The notes under the pieces are model-generated. The model made no database searches, was not told the origin of the DNA, and was given only the letters and a program-made list of their open reading frames with translations. A DNA stretch of 64,000 nucleotides from Adineta vaga (lineage: Eukaryota; Animalia; Rotifera): positions 12,710,001 through 12,774,000 of the forward strand of contig CP075492.1 in assembly GCA_021613535.1 (NCBI GenBank). The letters run 5' to 3'. A program made the translations under genes and the position numbers. Positions 855-46,545 of this stretch are shown one piece after another (within the stretch, counting starts at the first letter, position 1; each line of letters begins with the position of its first letter).

Positions 855-1232
855 TTCTTTTTCTTTACAAAACTCAAATCAATCTCTGCTGACGTTATTA
901 TTCTCGAACTCGAAAATAATAAAAATGAAAATATTATGTAGAAAATCGAAGAAAAAGAAAAAGAATAGATGAAGATTAAACAGAATAACAAAATCTTTCT
1001 TTTGTTTTGCTACCATGCCAGCCGTACATTCTCTCTCTCTTCTTGTTTCGTTGATGTTTTATAATGAAAATCTTGTACTATTATTTAAAAGAACAAAACC
1101 AAAAATAGACATCTTTCTCGCCTAATTCTGTTATTACTTGACAAAATATTTCGAATGGAAATGAACGAACGTAAATCAAGCGCTCATTTCTTATTTATAT
1201 CTTTTGCATAATCTCGTTTTCGATTTTAAAAA

Positions 1233-1451
1233 ATGGGTAGTAGTAGTTCAAGTTCATCGACAGCGAAGAATTCTGATTGTTATCTACAGAATAAACTTGA
1301 ACGACAACAATGTTTACAAACTCATTCAAATAATGATATTATCACTTCGAAAACTTTATTTGAAAATAATCCCTTAAAAAGAAATTGTTCATTTCCATGT
1401 AATGAAAATAGACGAACGACAATGATGCACAATATGAAACCTAACAATTAA
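1233..1451 (+). other. short MG-start ORF, possibly a decayed gene
   Basis: MGSSSSSSSTAK N-myristoylation-like start after AAAA ATG context; downstream sequence has GAA-repeat (poly-Glu-like) but interrupted frames. Confidence 0.25.
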
Positions 1452-1841
1452 ACCATCATTGTACATTGGCACGTGCTGTCCTCTAGAGCATCGATTTCTT
1501 AATGGTTACACAATTATTCTAGAATAGAAACTGAAGAAGAAGAAGAAGAAGAAAAAAGAACATTATGATCTGAAACTGAATTACCCATATTTTTCTCTTG
1601 TGAACAACTACTTTAAGTTTTGTTTTAAAAAGCTTTCAATTTCTTTCAAGGAAATAAAAAGTATTGATTCTCTGAGAACGTACTTTACGTTCACACTGAA
1701 AAGGTAATTTAGTCAATGATGATATGCTTGATTGTGCTTTTCGTTTCAGATGTTTTTCGTTTGTTTTCATTTGATTCAAACGAATATCATCGTTGTTATT
1801 GATCCTATCAATTGAATCTCTTGAGAAAGATTCATTTATTC

Positions 1842-3757
1842 ATGGATGATTTCATGAATGATTTAGAAGCAGGACTAAATTATAATCCTGCTCGACATAT
1901 GAATAAAAAAATGAAAAAACGTAAACAACTTGATGCACTTTTAAAATTTCGTTCAACAAAATCGAATCGATTACCTAATCAAGTAATTCATACTTCTGAA
2001 GATGAACTATTTCTACCCGAAAAGAAATCTTCTCTTCCAATTCAATTGTAAGTGATAGAAATCTAGAAAGTATGTCAATTATTCATGTTGCATTTTTATA
2101 GACAATCATCACGATATCGTCGATGGTGGAGTTATACTCGACATCTTTTTTCCTTTTGTCTTGTCTGTATCTTTATGATTGTTTGGTAAATTTTGACGTT
2201 TGTTTTCTTCGAAATCGATTATTATTCGTTTCTTTTTCTAGTGTTGGGTTAGCTTATGCAAATATAGAATTAAAAAGTGAAGTACAAAATTTATCTTCAC
2301 GTGTTACTGAAAGTAAGAAGAATAAATAGAATTCGAAAGGAATGTTTCCTTTTGTTTTGTTTAGTTGAAAAACGTTTTTCCAATTCGGATATAAATCGTG
2401 TGATATCTTCGATTGAAAAAATAAGAAGTCGTTTGAATTTAATCGAAAGATGGAATGTGTCGTATGTATATCAGCGATTACAAAAGTTACAAACGGATTT
2501 TAATCAAATTAAACGAAATGTTCTATCAGTTGAGGTAGAGAATCACTTACAAATATCGATTGTTCTTATTGTGAATGTTGATTTAGACATCAATGAATCA
2601 TGAAGAAGTCGATGTTTCATCGAAATTAGATAAAATTGAAGAAAAGTCAACACATTTTTCTGAAGTTGCTGATGAATTAGAAGTAAGAATTTGTCATGTG
2701 TGCAATCATTCAATGATCATTTTTGGTTTTTTTTATTTAGAAACTAAGTCATGATGCTGACGAACAAGCTACACATATGGTTGCTGAAAAAACGAAACCA
2801 TTCGATAGAAGTTTAATTGAACATTTATTGGAACAAGAACGACGAGAAAATGTTGATCAAGTTAGATTGATACAAAGAAATTTTGTTTATAAGGAAGATT
2901 TCTTTTTCACTTTAGGATTCAAAACAATTGACCAAACATATTACCTCATTAAATGATACTCTCTATGCAAATTCAATGAAATGGCATGAAGAATTAAAAT
3001 CTCTTCGAGTAAATTATTATGATTTCAATAAAAATTCAAAAGATACTCATCGTTTAGTTTTAGATCGAACTTCAAAGTCTGAATCAAAGTTCGAAAATAC
3101 AAGAATTCATCCTACAATTGCAAGAATTGTCTACCTTTATGCATAATTCAACAGAAAAGGTATAGAATTTATTCATTTTTATTTGTATACAGTAGGTGTT
3201 TTTTTTACATAGACATCGATAATAACGACAAGTTTACAAACAGATCTGGATCGATTAAGAACTCAATTAGAGACATGTAAATGCTCAAAAGGTAATCTTA
3301 GAATGATTTCAATTCTTAACCTATTCGAATTTCTTCAGAACCAACTATTTTGAAACCATCAATTGTAGATAGCAATCAACTACAACAAAGTCTTGTTACC
3401 AAACCTAATAGTAAGTTTATTGAATCTATTCATGGACTGATTAATCCTTTGATTCAAAGATCCTGTCTATTACGTTATTAATTCCTATTTAGATGTTGAC
3501 AAACTACTCTCATCTTCTTCCGTGACGGGCAGTACCACTATTGTTTCTACAGACAGTATGTGTTTTTTTGCTAGGTCAATTTCATTTTTCAATCTCATAT
3601 TTCTTTCTCTTAGCAGTCAATTTATCAAAGAAAACTGATCGTAACAATACAATTGATAGTAAGTGATATACATTTATTTTTTGAATAATTTCGTTTTGTA
3701 ATTTTTCTTTTTTTAGTCGCTCAAATTCTCAATCAATCGTTGACACTTTCGAACTAA
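1842..3757 (+). CDS. EFCAB14: EFCAB14-like type II membrane coiled-coil protein (multi-exon)
   Basis: MKKRKQLDALL resembles the EFCAB14 N-terminus MKKRKELNALI; TM segment FCLVCIFMI/VGLAYANIELK followed by long coiled coil; many short GT-AG introns; TAA at 3755-3757. Confidence 0.6.
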
Positions 3758-4050
3758 TTCTATTGGTCCCGAAATCTTGCTTTCTTCTTTAAATCGATTG
3801 ATTGATTGATCATCCCACATTTGTGTATACTTCTCTTGTGCTTTTTTACTTCGTCCGTGAACAGTTCTTGTTAATGTTTAATGTCTATTTGATGCTCTTA
3901 TTGCCGGTGAGCATGAATACCACATAGAAATCTCTTCGTCTCTCTCTCTCTTTTCGGTTTTGCTACATTTTCTTTTGTATCATAAATAAATAAAAAAAAG
4001 CACAAAAGACGAAATCTTATTTGATATCGTTCGTTTTTTTTAAGAAGAGA

Positions 4051-5032
4051 ATGGATCGTAATCATTACAATTTATATGTAAGCAATATTTCGGATAGAAC
4101 GACTGAAGCAAGTTTAATGTAAGTTTTCAACGATGTATCAATTAAGATTGATTGAACAAATCAAATTTTATTTCAGTAAATATTTTTCACAATTTGGAAA
4201 AATTGAATGTTTTACTTTTTTAATAAAATGTTATCGACGTCATACTTCAGCTGCAATGATTACATATGCAAGACAAACGGATATGAATTATATTATTCAA
4301 CATAGTCAATGTGTAGAATTTGATAATCAGACTTTATTCCTCCGTCGTACATTACCAATGGAACGTCCTGCATTCGAACGTTTTATGTCATCGAATGAAT
4401 TATTGGTATCGTTACCTTCTCTTTCGAAGGATCAACAATTTAATGATGTAACTATACGAATGCATTTCAGTCAATATGGTTCTATTGTTTTTTGTCGAGC
4501 AGTTATACCTTCAACAACATACTTGATTGATTTTGTCAATTCGAATAGTGTCGATTGTGCAATACTTGACGAACCACATTTTTATAATGATAAACAATTA
4601 ATACTTCGAAAGTATGTTTCAATAAATCGTCTTGGATTACGTCAGACGAATCGAACCTTATCATTTCAAGGAAATATGATGAGTCGATCTAATTTAAGAG
4701 AACGAATTCGTCGATTAAATCATGTCATAGAAGCAATTGAATTTGGACGCAAAGTTGAAATACGTTTAACTAAATGTATGTATGAAGAAAAAAAAGTCAA
4801 ATTAAATAAAAAACAAGATGAAGAAATAAACAGTTTACGAGAAAAATCAAATGATTTAAATTCAACTATTAAAAAACTCAATAAAAGCAATGATTCATTG
4901 AAACTATTATTCGAACAAAGTCGACGAAGAAAAGCACAACTAATTCGTTTGTATAAAGATAAACTTCAACAGGAACAAAAGCGAATTAAAGAATTAAAAG
5001 AAGCAATCGATCTATTGAAGTTATTTGAATGA
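4051..5032 (+). CDS. two-RRM RNA-binding protein with C-terminal coiled coil
   Basis: MDRNHYNLYVSNIS...KYFSQFGKIE (RRM1; intron 4119-4176); HFSQYGSIV...DFVNSNSVDCAILDEPH (hnRNP A-like RRM2); heptad-rich tail. Confidence 0.75.
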
Positions 5033-5331
5033 AGAAATATTATTTTTTGTTTTTCAAAATCTTGTGAATGCAGATATTGAATGTTATGAAATTTTGTTAG
5101 TACCCTTTTTTTTTGTATTGAATAGGATTTATATTAAAAGTATGAATGGTAAGAGACAATTGTCAAATTATTCGATTTAGTTTCCGTCGTGTGAACTTTG
5201 TCTCATAAAACAGAAATTTTTCAAAACAAAATCAGAGAACGTATCGTGAATAAGAATTGAATGCTTGAATATATATTATATACTATAATTACAAATTTGC
5301 TAGATTAAGTAAAAAAAACAACAACATATGC

Positions 5332-6366
5332 TTATTTCTTTATTTTCATTTTTGATTCTGTAGTTGTCACTTGTACTGCTTTGCCTGATGTGAACCAAGC
5401 ATCTGCATCTTTATTCTCCTTTGGAGTTGGAATATCAGCACGTGAACGTTTCTTTTCTTCAGCAGAAATCTTATAGTATTCATCACGTTGACGTAATAAT
5501 TCTTGATTTAGTTGTCCATCTTGAGTGAAAGCCATCATCAATTGAGGCACACCGAAAGGAAGTGAATCACCACGATCGACTTGCCATGCTAAAGAAGAAA
5601 AAAACAACATCAATATTCTTGAAATCTTCATTTTTATTCTCGGAAAAAATCTATCACTTACTATGAAATGTTTTTCCATAAGTATGAATTAATTCTTTCA
5701 TAACTTCTCTTTCGGCAATATCTGGTACACCAGGTGTAACTAATGTACCACTTTTAACTTCATAAACATGTGAATGCCATAATTTCTTTTCTTCCGAGGG
5801 TAATTGATTGAAAAGTTCTTCAGAAATGATATACTCAACACCAATAAGACGTGCATCTGGACGATCACTATCATAGATAACACATTGTCGAACATCTTGG
5901 TTAATATGCGAACAATAATGATGAGCAATTAACTGTCGAGTCATATCGCCTAAGGTGAAAAATAAATTATTTTACTTTTCTGAGAAACTCATTATTGATT
6001 ATTTACCGGAATAAAAATGGAAACCACAGACATGTTGATGAATAGTATTCACTGGTGCAAAATGACCCTAAATAAAGACGATATTTCTCTTCGATCCGTG
6101 ACTGATCGATAGTTACATACTGCCATTCGAGCACCCATATCAAGAATATGTCCTACGATGTATCACAAAGAAAATATCAATCAAACAATCAGATTAAAAC
6201 TTCTTCTTTTCGAAATACCTTTCACAGTCATTTTTGATCCTGGTGTATGATGATCATGTTGATGTCCACTATGTTGATGTTCGCTTGATACTGGTTTCCA
6301 TTGAAAGACTTTTGCAGCACCTAGACCTGTACCGAAAGCTAATGCATAACCTAACAATCTTCGCAT
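5332..6366 (-). CDS. DUF1264 / oil-body-associated protein (OBAP)-like
   Basis: 5 exons; motifs HVCGFHFY, RQLIAHHYCSH, QCVIYDS..ARLIGVEYII, LWHSHVYEVKSG, TYGKTFHTWQVDRGD.LP.G.PQLMM. Confidence 0.9.
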
Positions 6367-6508
6367 ATTAATCTATAATTTGTGATGAGATATATATTTC
6401 TATTTATTGATATCTCTGTTTTGTTTTTGTTTCGAATGTTCGATTAAGAGAAAAAAAAAGCAACTATACATTTTTCACACATATACATAATACACAAGAA
6501 AAATGTCT

Positions 6509-8885
6509 CTAATGAGCTATTGTTTTATGCAAGAGAAGTCCTGCAACTGATCCGCGTTCATTTAAAGCTGTTCGTAATCGATTTTCTTTTTCAATCAGTT
6601 CTTCAAAACGCATTAACTAGAAGAAGAAGAAGAAGAAAGAAAACTGTTCTACAAAATATTGAATGAATAATATTCAAAATACTTCATGAAGTCGTTCAAG
6701 ATCAATTTGAGCACGTCGTCGTCGATCCCATTTGAAATGTTTTGAACATAACCTTTTTGGTGCTGTACATAATTCATCGGATATTTCAAATAAATTTCTC
6801 TCTAATGGACATCCACATGCTTCATCAGGACTGATCTGAAAGAATCGAATGTACATACATTTTTCATTTGTTAAAACAATTAAATCAAACTTACTTTTGG
6901 ATCTCGAGCATGTTCTGGACAAATAACTTTAAGTCGTTTACAGTAAAGATTATTTGTTCGATCATAATTATCACAGAATAAACCTTCAATATTGGATTTC
7001 ACATTTGATCCATACGAGACTTGACTTTCAAACTGAAATATCAATACTCATTATATTTATCTTCAATGTTTAGCACTCATATGACTGCTTACAAACAAAT
7101 ATCGACTATAATTTACTGCTCTTTTTATCACAGAAGAAACGTACCCAATACCCTTTTCTTCAGAGACTAACCACGAAAAAAAGGAGAGAAGAACTGATAT
7201 GACTCATCATCGTGTGCCTCAAAAGTGTTTCTAGTCCGAAAATAGATATTCGATAGTTAACAAAGAACTGTTTCTTTACCCGAATAAAACATTTATCAAT
7301 ATGACGTATATAAGATTTTTGACTAATTTCTTGATTACATAAAATACAAAAACACATGCCATCATGTTCATCATTAGTAGTGTCATATTTCTGAAGTATA
7401 AAATCATTTATACAGATATTGAGTATATAATCCACTTACATCCGCATCTTTTGTCGCTTTTAATTGCTTTCCACGTTCAATAATTTCATCTAATTGTCGT
7501 TGTCGTTCATCGAGTACTGTTAAACGTTGTTTGATTTGATCAATTTCAATTCGAATATCTTCAATTGATGCTTTATTTAAAGCATCAGCAACTGAAGGAA
7601 TTGTTTGCCATTGCATTAAACGCATTGGAAGAAATTGGAGAAGTCGACTGCAATGAATAAATTGAGAATAAAATCAGACAAAAAAGAACCAGGTTTTTCG
7701 TATACTTTCGTGCTAATTCTAATCCACATTTCTCTGAACAATATTTTGACTCTGAACGAGCTTCAAAAAGACAACCTGGACCATAGCATTGTCGAGCAGG
7801 AGGTTCCGTTGTACGACGTCGACGGTTTCGGGCACTAAGATTTTTTGTATCATCCTAAATAGTCCTCTTTAATGCTTTATGTATTGTCAAGAAAATAAAA
7901 ACTAACCTCATCGTTTAAATCTATTTGTGGTTCTCGTTTGAGGGTAGTTATTCCACTTCCACTAATATTTCGTTTTCGTTTTTCACTGGTACCGACATTT
8001 TTAGTTGTTAATGTACGTTTTGTGGTATGTTTTACTTCATGATCATCACGTGATGACAATGGAGATTCTTGCTGAGCACCAGTTGAACGATTTATATTCG
8101 AAGTATTTCCATGTAAAACTTGTTTTTGTCGAGACATAACATTTGCTGCTGATGATGACGATGAATCCGATTGATTACTAGTTGAATCTTCATTTCCAAA
8201 TTGATCCATACTATTTGAATGTTCTCGATTTTTTCGATCAATCTATAAAAGAAAAATAGGTTTTGAAAAACATAGTCATGATGTTAATCTGTAACCTACA
8301 GATGATGTGTCCAATTGTTTGGCGGAAGGATTTAATAATTCTGCTTCTTTACGTAATCTTCGCTAGAATAAAAATAATTGCTTTAATCTCTACTATCTCA
8401 ATAATAGAAGTATTTCTTCGATTCACATACAGTTTATTTTTATTATAAAAAGAGAAAGAATAATCGAAGAGAAAAAGCTTACCCGAATACATTTACTTAA
8501 TCTTTCTTCAATATCTTTTTGTGATTTGCTATATTTAATTTGTAAACTAGGTTTCTTATCTATTGAAATATATTTTCTTCAAAATAACATTTATTCAAAG
8601 TAAAACTTACGTCGACATTGATGACAAAAGAAGTTTTCGATTTTTCCAGATTCTTTTTCGCTCATACCAATACATATACCATGATACCAAATATTACATG
8701 CATCACAAGCACTACAAAAACTTATGTATATTCAATCAAATCTAATCCAATATTTCTTACATCATAAATGTCGAACAATCACTTGATCGACATAAACAAT
8801 ATAAAGTTTGTCCATCACCTAGACTGGAATTTGATAATGATTTTTGACTCAATGATCCGGACGGATGTTTTAATATTGATGACAT
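6509..8885 (-). CDS. CXXC1: CXXC1/Cfp1/Spp1, COMPASS PHD-finger subunit
   Basis: PHD: YCLCRSSDCSTFMICCDACNIWYHGICIG; QCYGPGC...SKYCSEKCG; C-terminal zf-CpG_bind_C region ending GLLLHKTIAH*. Confidence 0.9.
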
Positions 8886-40755: not shown

Positions 40756-41151
40756 GTCTTTTTCGTATCAATCATCGATATTTTATTGTAATATTCTCTC
40801 TCAACAAAAAAAAATGATCGTATATTTGTTATTCAACAGAAACTGTAGTTGCAATGATACATGTTTTAATCATAATCGATCAAAATCTCTTCAGATCTAC
40901 CACATATTTTCGAAATTGTGCAATCTAAAATATGATTTCCGTTCTTCACAATGAATCTTTGCCTGAAGATTCAATGAAGATGGTATCATCCAATATTTTA
41001 TCGAATTTTCTTCTACACTAATAAAATAAGATTCAATCGTTGTATTTACAGGTTCTAGTCAGACGGTCATATGAGAAAATCTCATAAGTTGAATTAAATG
41101 GAATGTAAAATCACGCTTATGAGAAATAGTATCTACTGTTATACTGCTTTA

Positions 41152-41244
41152 ATCAAGGGGAAACAATGTGATTTCTTGATTTCTACGATTTCCAATTGAT
41201 TTCTAGTTGATTTCTTGTCTGGAAATCACATTGTTCCCCCTTGC
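41152..41244 (+). repeat. left terminal repeat; internally palindromic, multiple GATTTC units
   Basis: CAAGGGGAAACAATGTGATTTC...GAAATCACATTGTTCCCCCTTG. Confidence 0.85.
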
Positions 41245-41310
41245 GTCTATACCAACAGTTGTAAATATATACAAATATGGAACAGAGGAATTTTTATTTT
41301 ATTCTTTTTT

Positions 41311-43070
41311 TCAATAAATATTTTTATAAATGGCATCACCCTTTTTCACTACCTTCTTCATTTCTTTCACATCATGAACTCTGACAATATCAGTGTTCTG
41401 TTGTATGCATGCCATAATGGTTGCTCCAGTACTGATAACTCTATCACGTGCAATAGGTCCATCACAAATAGTACCCGAAAACTTCTTTCTCGAAGGACCT
41501 AGAAGAGTAACCATACCATTGAAAGTTAAATGAATTTGTTCAATATTTTCTTCGCAATGTTCAGTAACCAACATTGAGTATTTTTTAAAACACGAAGCAT
41601 ATTTAATGACACTTAAGTTTTGTGATAAATTCTTTGCAAATCCAATACCAGCATCTGTGATGATTTGCCATTTTCTGATACCACTTTTGAATCCTTTCAA
41701 TATTTGTAAGCCTAATTCTCGAGATATTCCATTAATCAAATTGGCGACTTGTACACTCCAATTTTCGACACTAAATGAAGAATTTAAAGGACCAACCATG
41801 TATTCATTTATATCTTCGTTATTCATATTGGACTCGTAATTATTTAATGTAGACATTGTTGAAGGCGTGCCTCGTGTATGATTCATTATATATGGACATC
41901 CGTACTTTGCAACAACATCAAATATTTTCGGCTCATATAATCCCATAGAAATATCATTAATAATATCAGCACCAGCTTCCAAACATTGCTCAGCAACGTT
42001 CGCTCTGCAAGTGTCTACGGAAATAGGACAGGTAGATCATTTCTCATTTTCGGATTTTCGGAGTATTTTGACCACAGATAGAACACGTCGAAGTTCTTCT
42101 TCTTCACTAGGTGCAATACTACCTGGTCTTGTCGAAACACCTCCAATATCTAATATAGTAGCACCTTCATCTAACAATCGTAATGCAGTGGTTTCTATCT
42201 TTTCAGCAGTAGCATTATAATTATCACCTCCATCACTAAAAGAATCAGGAGTTATATTCATAATACCCATGATCAAAGTTTGATGTTTGTATTTTAATTG
42301 ATCAAGTTTTAAAGGATTTTTATCATGATCTAATTCTAATCGTAGAACTGGTATAATTTGTAAAAGATCCGATCATTCTTGGAGCGTTTCATCTTGTTTA
42401 CCAGTTAACAACTGAGTCAAATGGTGATGAATAGGTTCAGCAGTAACCGGATGCAAAGTATCAGAGCTAAGAAGTTCACATAAAGGTTGTAAGACAAATG
42501 ATCTTTCCAACATGGATTGATGAGGAATAATCAAATCATTGGTATTGAAAATAATATTATCGTACACTAAAATATCTAAATCAATTGATCTTGGTCCATT
42601 ATTGATCTTTTTGATTCTATTAATATATTCACACTCGATTTCTTTGCATTTCTTCAGTAAATCATGTGGCGAAAGATCATTGAACGAAATTTTAATAACT
42701 CCATTAAAAAAATCAGGTTGATTCTTATAATACATTGGCTTGAATATATATAAAGAGGAAGTAGATGAAATATTGATTTTAGCTTTTTCTAAATAATATA
42801 ATGCCTCTTTGATGTTTCTAATTTGATTACCTTGATTAGAACCTAAAGGAATATGAGCAATATGATTTTGTTTTTTGATAAAAGCAGACTCATCACTCGA
42901 AGTTGAGAAATTAAACTGTAGTTATTAGTTCCATCTTCTGAAAAGAATCTTTGTTCATAATTGAACTCACACCTCTTCTATCGGTAAAAGGAATAGCATT
43001 TGGTTTGGTAACTTTAACAAAGACATTTTCAATGTTATTCTTTGAAGTAATTAGTTGACCAATTTTCCTC
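41311..43070 (-). pseudogene. FOL1: fungal-type FOL1 (DHNA C-terminus + HPPK + DHPS), 5'-truncated and intronless
   Basis: VKVTKPNAI (DHNA); LGSNQG, QPDFFNG, GPRSIDLDIL, IPH..MLERSFVLQPL (HPPK); [47 protein letters not shown] (DHPS); TGA at 42373 and 42037; frameshift near 42920. Confidence 0.9.
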
Positions 43071-43142
43071 TCTCAAACAATATATACAACATAAAGTGCT
43101 TTTATATTCTCTAGTAACATCACAACCAGTTTATTTGCATAA

Positions 43143-44431
43143 TCAATAAATCATATTTGTAGAAGTTCCGCATCCGGAAAGTAATCTTTTAAATGCGTTG
43201 GGAGTGGAACTTCGGAAGGTATATATATATATATGAAGCAATTTAGTACAATTGACTCGTGTTGCTTCTCTTGAAAAATGATGTGTTACTGCATCTAAAG
43301 TTTCATAAGTGACATCAACGTCGAGTTTTCTTGTTAAGCGTGTTTTGGTATCTAGTAGAAATTGTTCGACATAATCATCGTGACCTTCATCAAGAATAAG
43401 TTCGGTAAGATGAGGATAGTGAACCACTGATAAATGTTGACCGTTATCCGTTGATTGTCGCGAAAATTTGTTTTTCTGTGGTTGTTTATTGACTATAGTT
43501 AATATTTTCATGGATGGAAATGATTTAGCAATTCGAACAAAAAAAATTATGTTCAAATGGACGTTCATCAAATAATGAAACTTCACAAACATGTCTAAAT
43601 ATTTCATTTGGTAGATTATTTGTAATACCATGGTAATATTTTGCATAATATGGAAGTGAATAAATATGACATTGACCTTGTTTAAGATTTGAAAAATAGT
43701 CAACACGTGACGTAACTTTGTGAGAAAGAAAATCTTTGAATGAAACTTGAATATCTTCATTTGATAGTAAAGAAATCTGATTGTCGAGATATATAGTTGA
43801 ACGTATATTAAAGATAAATTTCTTCATTTGTAATAAATGATCAAAAATAACTTGTTTAATATGATAGCCATCAATAAATCTTCTCTCATTAATTACTGCA
43901 ATACATAAATCAAGTTCTTCTAGATTTACCATCCGATACAGAAGCGGTAAAATAAGTTCGCTGTATTCATTTGTTTTCCATTTACAACGTAAGGAGAAAC
44001 GTTTCAGATTAGGTAATTGTTTCTAAAAGAAATCAATGCTTTCAATATAAGTTAGAAATGAATCTGAATAATTTACTTTATTATCAACTGGTATCCATGG
44101 AGGAAAAATGTGAAGGATATCTATATACAAGTCCCGAAGTTGATCGAAACGACCATCAAGTAAATAAAGACAATCGATAAAATCCTCTAAATTGATCCGC
44201 AATTCTAATAAAATTGAAGTGGAAATAGTTGGAAGACATAATCGAAAGGATAATCTCTGGCATCGAAATAAAAATGGACCGAAACACAAAGATCGCAATT
44301 TGGAACTTGCCGCTATAATACGTGTAAATATATACACATTCCCATCATTTGCTACAGTTGGCATTCTACGTTGCACAATATCGATGACCAATGATGAAAT
44401 TTGATTTTGAAGTATATGAATTAAAGAAGCT
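43143..44431 (-). pseudogene. 3' part of an expanded rotifer F-box/LRR-like family gene
   Basis: DCLYLLDGRFDQL, PLLYRMVNLEELDL, CHIYSLPY, FDERPFEH, HDDYVEQFL; frameshifts in an A-run near 43540 and a (TA)n near 43225; 5' end replaced by telomeric repeat. Confidence 0.65.
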
Positions 44432-44597
44432 TGAGGGTGGGTGTGGGTGTGGGTGTGGGTGTGGGTGTGGGTGTGGGTGTGGGTGTGGGTGTGGGTGTGG
44501 GTGTGGGTGTGGGTGTGGGTGTGGGTGTGGGTGTGGGTGTGGGTGTGGGTGTGGGTGTGGGTGTGGGTGTGAGTGTGGATGTGGGTGTGGGTGTGGG
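44432..44597 (+). repeat. interstitial telomeric repeat (TGTGGG)n, 26 units plus TGAGGG-TGGG lead-in
   Basis: perfect hexamer array with two variant units (TGTGAG, TGTGGA); TGTGGG is the reported Adineta vaga telomeric unit. Confidence 0.85.
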
Positions 44598-44836
44598 TAA
44601 TACTCGTCTCTTCATACCCAACCTTTGAAGTAATTTCATCGTGATCCTGAAGATATGAGTCATAGTAAAAGAAGCTAAAAAAAACATTCCTTCTAAATAA
44701 TACTAGGATTACCGAGAAGAGATAGAAGACATTTTTTGAACACATGTTCAAAAATATAGAATATTCGTTCTTATTTTAATGAGATAAAATTACTAATTAA
44801 ATTTATATTAGATGAAAATGAAAATGATAAAAAATT

Positions 44837-45110
44837 TCAATCGGAAAAATTGAATTTATTTGATTTTTTCTTTGTTACAATATGTCTTAATCATCGTCGT
44901 GCTTTATCTGATAAACTACAATGTTGTAATGAAAGAACTTTTAATGTTTGATTTCGTTCAAGAATTTCTATAAGAATTTGCAATGATTGATCTGTTATAA
45001 ATTTATTAAATGAAACATATATATTTTTCTAATGAAGAATTTGATTGAGAAAGAATTTTTGCAAATAATGGAATACCTTGATCAGATATTCCAGTATTAT
45101 GTAAAGTAAG
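44837..45110 (-). pseudogene. C-terminal fragment of an RNase-inhibitor-like LRR gene
   Basis: LTLHNTGISDQGIPLFAKIL...NQTLKVLSLQHCSLSD; frameshift and TGA; cut at the right terminal repeat. Confidence 0.65.
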
Positions 45111-45206
45111 GGGGAACTATGTGATTTCCAGACAAGAAATCAATAGAAATCAATAGAAATCGAAAAGGTGATTTCAAATCAAGAAATCACATTGTTTCCA
45201 CTTGGT
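45106..45206 (-). repeat. right terminal repeat (inverted copy of 41152-41244)
   Basis: GTAAGGGGGAACTATGTGATTTCCAGACAAGAAATC...GAAATCACATTGTTTCCACTTG. Confidence 0.85.
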
Positions 45207-45654
45207 TTTAATTCTACAGAGGTTATCGATCGCACTTTGGATGAGATTTTAAACATCTGTATGCACTTTATTGTTTTTTTGCAAAATATGTTCGCTAAAA
45301 TTAGAAATCAGTTGGGTCGAATGATTCGATATATATAAACCATAGGGGGGGAAAGACAAACGATGTTTTGTATCATTATTACCTCGATCTTGATTGATCA
45401 ATTGATTTCGAAAATCGTCTGAAAATAGAACCGATATTTCCTATCGAAACTTATCAATCACTAGAAAACAACAAAAGAATCTAAAAATACAGAGACATAT
45501 ATGAGAAGACGAAAGCATTTATGCAGCTAGCTACAATATTCACGGGCCTACTATTCCATCTGGTGTTATTCACATAGTCGATTATGCGTTCCTTTTTAAA
45601 GCAGATTCTTTTCTTTTTCTATTAGGCTGTTTTTATTAACTATTCAATATTAAA

Positions 45655-46545
<891 letters not shown>

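Follow-up and report, generated by a model that had tools for sequence, protein, structure and literature searches.

Bacterial composite transposons, including those flanked by MITEs (miniature inverted-repeat transposable elements), consist of two short mobile elements that bracket passenger DNA, with a target-site duplication only outside the pair. The 'TE' elements of Drosophila that are bounded by FB elements have fold-back ends composed of short repeats around large passenger DNA. In maize, macrotransposons of the hAT element Ac leave an 8-bp duplication or footprint (PMC9910405), and for the Ac/Ds macrotransposons the same article cites Huang and Dooner (2008) and Wang et al. (2022). The Ac transposase binds subterminal AAACGG hexamers of Ac/Ds, and gene capture has been described as rare for hAT elements (PMC3260210). 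Here we describe a 4,051-bp block, at positions 41154-45204 of a 64,000-nucleotide stretch of the genome of the bdelloid rotifer Adineta vaga; this stretch, hereafter the window, comprises positions 12,710,001-12,774,000 of contig 3. The block is made up of a MITE, a 3.86-kb cargo of gene pieces and telomere repeats, and an inverted MITE of the same family. It was probably emplaced by one old composite ("macrotransposon"-like) transposition, in which a hAT-like transposase used the outer ends of the MITE pair.

Such an event would resemble those of the Ac/Ds macrotransposons in that two neighboring elements of one family jointly supply the outer ends, the intervening DNA travels as one piece, and an 8-bp duplication comes to surround the whole. 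The window MITEs also carry subterminal hexamer repeats (GATTTC), just as Ac/Ds elements carry AAACGG. The maize units differ in being formed by Ac and fAc copies that contribute one 5' and one 3' end, whereas the pair described here consists of inverted MITEs of ~90 bp with two identical outer ends; moreover, the event at this locus is an ancient one read from sequence and was not observed genetically. By analogy, the bracketing of passenger DNA with an outer-only duplication recalls the bacterial composite transposons, but the block resides in a eukaryote and carries pseudogenes and telomere repeats rather than selectable genes. A looser analogy may be drawn with the FB-bounded 'TE' elements, whose ends likewise fold back, are built from short repeats and enclose large passenger DNA; the FB arms, unlike the window MITEs, are tandem repeats that extend over hundreds to thousands of bp, with another duplication length and no sequence relation. 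Finally, Pack-MULE, Pack-CACTA and filler-bearing Ds elements share with the block a non-autonomous nature, inverted ends, a target duplication and several unrelated gene fragments aboard. They differ from it in that their ends are the two termini of a single element, with copied-in fragments in between, whereas the block has whole elements as its ends and a mosaic that was seemingly pre-assembled by telomere healing.

The left MITE (41154..41243, plus strand) is a complete element of 90 bp with its own ends CAAGGGG...CCCCTTG, and the right MITE (45107..45204, minus strand) is a complete element of 98 bp. The two are inverted relative to each other, and both outer ends of the pair are of the same kind; in inverted alignment they show 83% column identity with one 9-bp indel. 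Each contains terminal inverted repeats of 19-22 nt, with ends of the form CAAGGGG[A/G]AAC[A/T]ATGTGATTTC, and the 19-nt end motif is found four times in the window against 0.16 expected. Both fold into hairpins, with energies of -17.9 (left) and -16.3 (right) kcal/mol that correspond to z-scores of -6.2 and -4.6, respectively, and were equaled by none of 200 shuffled sequences. The hexamer GATTTC/GAAATC is present six times in each MITE, compared to 1.47 per kb across the window, and five of the six are direct repeats 8-11 bp apart, as in the subterminal GATTTC series of the left MITE. The ~95-bp inverted, palindromic, GATTTC-rich termini reported by a first-pass annotation of this DNA, which was made from the sequence alone, are therefore real. 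Synthesis of a terminus by fold-back from half a MITE was considered and rejected, since the internal repeats are direct rather than symmetrical. The oriented GATTTC repeats, at roughly one-turn spacing, may aid in identifying the transposase of the family.

These two MITEs are the sole members of their subtype in the genome. A 245-bp segment found at two chromosome-end regions (L060 9756-10000, contig 5 at 63.8 kb; L061 163-407, contig 3 at 100 kb; 92% identical) holds a truncated end of this subtype. The lone ends at these two places were considered as termini of a larger element, and this was rejected in favor of a duplicated chromosome-end segment with a truncated MITE.

The wider family was delineated by searching the genome (100.8 Mb in six contigs) with the end pattern, which gave ~40 matches as opposed to none for the reversed control. 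About 11 end matches pair as complete solo elements of 64-404 bp, and the remainder are lone ends. The solo copies define an element CAAGGGG...CCCCTTG with 8-bp duplications (ATAAAATG, GCTATAAT), which are perfect at two loci (L013, L021) and match at 7/8 positions at two others (L017, L019). The same ends were recovered in 61 metagenome contigs, where 38 complete elements include six with an 8/8 and three with a 7/8 duplication. Taken together, the 8-bp target-site duplication seen in hAT-superfamily MITEs, the CAAGG... ends on both strands, which conform to the YARNG-type terminal motif typical of hAT, and the oriented subterminal hexamers make the hAT superfamily the most likely affiliation of the family. 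This assignment is kept provisional, because P, Merlin and Zisupton elements likewise give 8-bp duplications and because searches for a transposase that could be linked to the family were negative.

Two further observations on the family deserve mention. A metagenome subfamily of ~470 bp (420-500 bp; L089, L090, L127, L133) combines perfect 8-bp duplications with long GATTTC/GAAATC arrays at both ends, and it could be nearer to an autonomous element than the window MITEs are. Two loci on contig 3 (L026 at ~17.51 Mb and L027 at ~19.53 Mb) are identical over the 340 bp examined, with a family end 2.3 kb off at equal spacing in both, which indicates a recent segmental duplication within the contig.

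The solo copies with perfect duplications also set the positions at which a duplication is to be expected around the block. Immediately outside the element ends at these positions, the left copy GCTTTAAT (41146..41153) and the right copy GTTTTAAT (45205..45212) are identical at 7/8 positions, with the consensus G[C/T]TTTAAT; the right copy corresponds to a single copy in the alignment of related species. Matches of 7/8 or better make up ~0.1% of 8-mer pairs in the AT-rich window, that is, a chance of ~0.001. The left MITE is flanked by GCTTTAAT and CGTCTATA, and the right MITE by ATGTAAAG and GTTTTAAT. The inner flanks CGTCTATA and ATGTAAAG match neither each other nor the outer flanks, so neither MITE has a duplication of its own, in agreement with the first-pass annotation. 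That annotation had also remarked on TTTA at both outer ends; the letters are indeed there, but they lie inside an 8-bp duplication and do not constitute a 4-bp one. The block thus ends in two complete copies of one element, its boundaries fall exactly at family element ends on both sides, and the target duplication is present outside the pair only, which is the configuration of a composite transposon or macrotransposon.

Further evidence for insertion comes from the site itself. Contig 3 is 20.35 Mb long, and the site is therefore chromosome-internal. As had been surmised, the block lies between ordinary host genes, a histidine phosphatase on the left and an astacin metalloprotease on the right (45655-46545, directly beyond the block). 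Homologues of the left neighbor led to two contigs from related bdelloids in ENA assemblies, L082 and L083, with 80% and 72% exon identity, respectively. The order histidine phosphatase then astacin is kept in both, and L083 has the SMAD, lamin and LIM genes upstream of them as well. The 30 bp to the left and the 50 bp to the right of the block are collinear in L082, with only ~20 bp between them; in L083 the right-flank block follows a single GTTTAAT, and the neighboring genes are only 1.6 kb apart. Neither the end motif nor telomere repeats were found at the counterpart site of either contig. On the ohnologous segment of contig 6, from which the astacin gene is absent, the distance from the left neighbor gene to the gene beyond astacin is 454 bp, versus 6.3 kb in the window. 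The empty site that the first-pass annotation had proposed to look for is thus present in L082, and the block is absent from L083 and from the ohnologous chromosome. It follows that the MITEs and the cargo were inserted as a whole into a block of conserved non-coding sequence, ~440 bp upstream of astacin.

In L082 this intergenic region had a separate history, for ~6.2 kb of unrelated sequence (993-7157) lies between the phosphatase gene and the empty site; the region thus took a different insertion in another lineage. The segment contains five open reading frames (ORFs) of 128-228 aa, and no Pfam matches were found in it. An exact-protein look-up of the left neighbor gene of the window returned no record; the matches named in protein searches were from Adineta vaga, A. 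ricciae, Rotaria and Didymodactylos.

The cargo between the MITEs is a mosaic of gene pieces, all on the minus strand, together with a telomeric array, which is essentially as the first-pass annotation had described it. Beyond an unassigned spacer (41244..41310), which runs from the left MITE to the FOL1 stop codon, lies a FOL1-type folate synthesis pseudogene (41311..43067, minus strand) that retains the HPPK and dihydropteroate synthase part (Pfam PF01288, HPPK, and PF00809, Pterin_bind). Measured against an intact copy of 790 aa on contig 5, it spans residues 199-790 and is without the first 198; the two are 90% identical in DNA, with homology beginning only at 41313. The window piece is dead: tblastn and the stop count place in-frame stops at 42037-42039 and 42373-42375 and a frameshift near 42917. 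The contig-5 gene (L034 908-3280; ~3,855,917-3,858,289), which is the living parent-type copy of the pseudogene, is intact, intron-free and trifunctional (FolB-HPPK-DHPS). Among solved structures, yeast FOL1 (2bmb, 1e-120) is by far its best match, and the gene is a candidate for a horizontally acquired folate-synthesis gene in an animal.

The second piece (43143..44436, minus strand) derives from a multicopy rotifer gene family, with 63-70% identity to more than 40 loci in the genome; it is broken into overlapping frames and 5'-truncated at the telomere array. No Pfam match was found for it, and the nearest Atlas clusters, rotifer 'F-box domain-containing' proteins, score 0.84-0.88 (below 0.9), so that its F-box-like label serves as a lead only. 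Of the earlier gene labels, FOL1 and, by weak Pfam matches, the leucine-rich repeat (LRR) piece stand, but F-box has no Pfam support. The array that follows (44437..44598, plus strand) consists of 27 TGTGGG units (97% matches in TRF), with the G-rich strand running rightward. TGTGGG is the telomere repeat of A. vaga (PMC7943196), and the abutment of the multicopy piece on these units is the hallmark of a broken end to which telomere repeats were added in healing.

The last piece is the 3' part of an RI-type LRR gene (44786..45106, minus strand), whose end coincides with the inner boundary of the right MITE. A locus on contig 2 (L046 1501-1816), the ORF of which matches LRR_6/LRR_1 of Pfam at threshold, shares 90% identity with it. 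The contig-2 frame extends beyond the position where the right MITE begins in the window; the piece is cut at the terminus, as the first-pass annotation had proposed. The 5' side of this parent (L046 2170-2225; contig 2 ~15,643,840) is bounded by short head-to-head telomere remnants, TGTGGG-like then CCCACA, which mark another healed or fused end. No MITE end was found near either parent gene, on contig 5 (FOL1) or contig 2 (LRR). In its overall makeup the cargo looks like a bdelloid chromosome-end mosaic, with truncated genes joined through a telomere array.

These features may be assembled into a simple scenario. Two MITE copies would have come to lie ~3.9 kb apart in inverted orientation within mosaic DNA of the chromosome-end type, which would already have comprised a truncated FOL1 paralogue, a gene of the multicopy family healed by telomere addition, and the LRR piece. 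A transposase acting in trans would then have cut at the outer end of each MITE rather than at both ends of one MITE. The whole unit would have integrated in the core of chromosome 3, ~440 bp upstream of astacin, with duplication of the 8-bp target. We infer a hAT-like transposase, a donor site near a chromosome end, and this order of events. With a divergence of ~10% from the parent genes and of 17% between the MITEs, the event is an old one, and the unit is inert today. The evidence supports the earlier view that a non-autonomous DNA transposon, loaded with cargo, was inserted as one unit into a conserved, gene-dense region; the part of that view that falls away is its Pack-type nature, the ends being whole MITEs.

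Several observations weigh against composite transposition. The duplication is imperfect (7/8), and the relatives that supply the empty site are distant (72-80% identity in exons) and fix it only to within ~20 bp. The instance is also a single one: among ~56 end matches in the genome, no other + - ... + - end pair lies within kilobases. The unit itself is present in a single copy in the genome, with neither several copies nor excision footprints to attest to repeated mobility, and the additional paired copies with different cargo that the first-pass annotation had anticipated did not materialize as a second clear pair. The family end is absent from the 20 best hAT loci of the genome; none of the 86 hits obtained with the hAT dimerization domain has an end match, even to a shorter end motif, within 10 kb; and no transposase gene with these ends was found in the 61 metagenome contigs. 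The search for an autonomous partner with the same ends, which had been suggested on the strength of the first reading, was therefore negative in both sets, and the only interior ORF beside a lone end belongs to a cytochrome b561 host gene. Lastly, the exact point at which the LRR piece meets the right MITE is ambiguous by 4 nt, with TAAG common to the parent gene and the MITE end (window 45103-45110 versus L046 1809-1816). The first base of this MITE end is T, where the family has C, and the junction may have arisen through microhomology or end-joining rather than by clean insertion of the MITE at the donor.

The single instance, the missing transposase partner and the imperfect duplication would suit an insertion that involved no transposase, whereby a linear fragment that chanced to have a MITE at either end was taken up at a double-strand break and the agreement of the flanks at 7/8 positions is a coincidence. 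Bdelloids do repair many breaks and carry much captured DNA. Under such an account, the block would have no cause to end exactly at the family element ends, and its flanks would have to match by coincidence (~0.001) over the very length and at the very position dictated by the family. We consider this explanation unlikely.

A further alternative is the one favored by the first-pass annotation, namely Pack-type capture, in which the mosaic was gained as filler between the ends of one non-autonomous element through template switches in the course of gap repair and then transposed. The presence of gene fragments, the lack of a transposase, the inverted ends and the duplication are all as in Pack-type and filler-bearing Ds elements (PMC3260210), and the 4-nt TAAG overlap at the LRR/MITE junction would suit a switch guided by microhomology. 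Capture of this kind predicts two half elements in the same orientation, but the block has an entire MITE at each terminus, complete with its own pair of inverted ends, and the two MITEs are inverted relative to each other. Gene fragments are present, but the termini around them do not belong to a single element, and the pair of whole elements points to a composite of two. A mosaic joined by telomere repeats is also more simply understood as ordinary bdelloid chromosome-end DNA. Most members of the family, moreover, are solo elements of 60-500 bp, and the termini, each of them a whole MITE, cannot be upheld as Pack-type ends. A preponderance of solo MITEs had been named in advance as a result that would count against the transposon; it is what we observe, but it does not refute mobilization of the pair. 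Overall, capture between the ends of one element appears distinctly improbable.

The possibility that the cargo is old at this locus was also weighed. In such an in situ history, the MITEs would have inserted independently, a deletion or inversion would have erased their duplications, and the relatives would have lost the segment. Elements of the hAT type often hop locally, which would explain why two related copies lie side by side, and no other members of the window pair's subtype are found in the genome. An inversion between the two MITEs should have left each outer flank as the reverse complement of the opposite inner flank; the observed matches are 4-5/8 and 1-2/8, and on this test the inversion was rejected. 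An in situ history also needs separate losses in L082, where the loss would have had to be precise, in L083 and in the ohnologue, and we regard it as very unlikely indeed. An assembly artifact that joined chromosome-end sequence into the core is exceedingly improbable, for although misjoins typically occur at telomere repeats and where repeats lie at both borders, a misjoin would give neither an 8-bp duplication nor exact element ends, and 64-80% of the unique words among 31-mers sampled from the stretch occur in runs from at least four independent studies, though contigs do not prove junctions.

One metagenome contig, L098 (Ga0116229_10059172), is the only other candidate for a pair of this kind. 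It contains near-identical MITEs at 39-209 and 3184-3317, which are in direct orientation, 3 kb apart, and have no 8-bp duplications of their own; the outer flanks, GTTTTTTT and GTTTTTAA, are identical at 6/8 positions, and a laminin-G ORF lies between the MITEs. This arrangement is possibly a second composite. The more general proposition, that MITE pairs repeatedly act as composite transposons in bdelloids and move chromosome-end DNA with foreign genes and telomere repeats into the cores, strikes us as unlikely. If true, such recurrent transposition would account for part of the interstitial telomere repeats and of the dispersal of foreign genes from chromosome ends.

As a vehicle for spreading foreign genes, the role in which the first-pass annotation had cast it, the unit remains speculative: the FOL1 piece is a truncated pseudogene and the event a single old one, so a general role of this kind is not supported. 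With one old event, a dead cargo and a mechanism that is already known, the reach of the locus is correspondingly limited. Nevertheless, most of the foreign genes of bdelloids, like most of their transposons and telomere-repeat scars, are kept close to chromosome ends, and the routes by which such material enters the gene-rich cores are poorly documented. The locus described here probably offers a worked example of one such route, in which a MITE pair would have moved a 3.9-kb mosaic of the chromosome-end type, with part of a fungal-type folate gene and an array of telomere repeats, to a position beside a conserved astacin gene.

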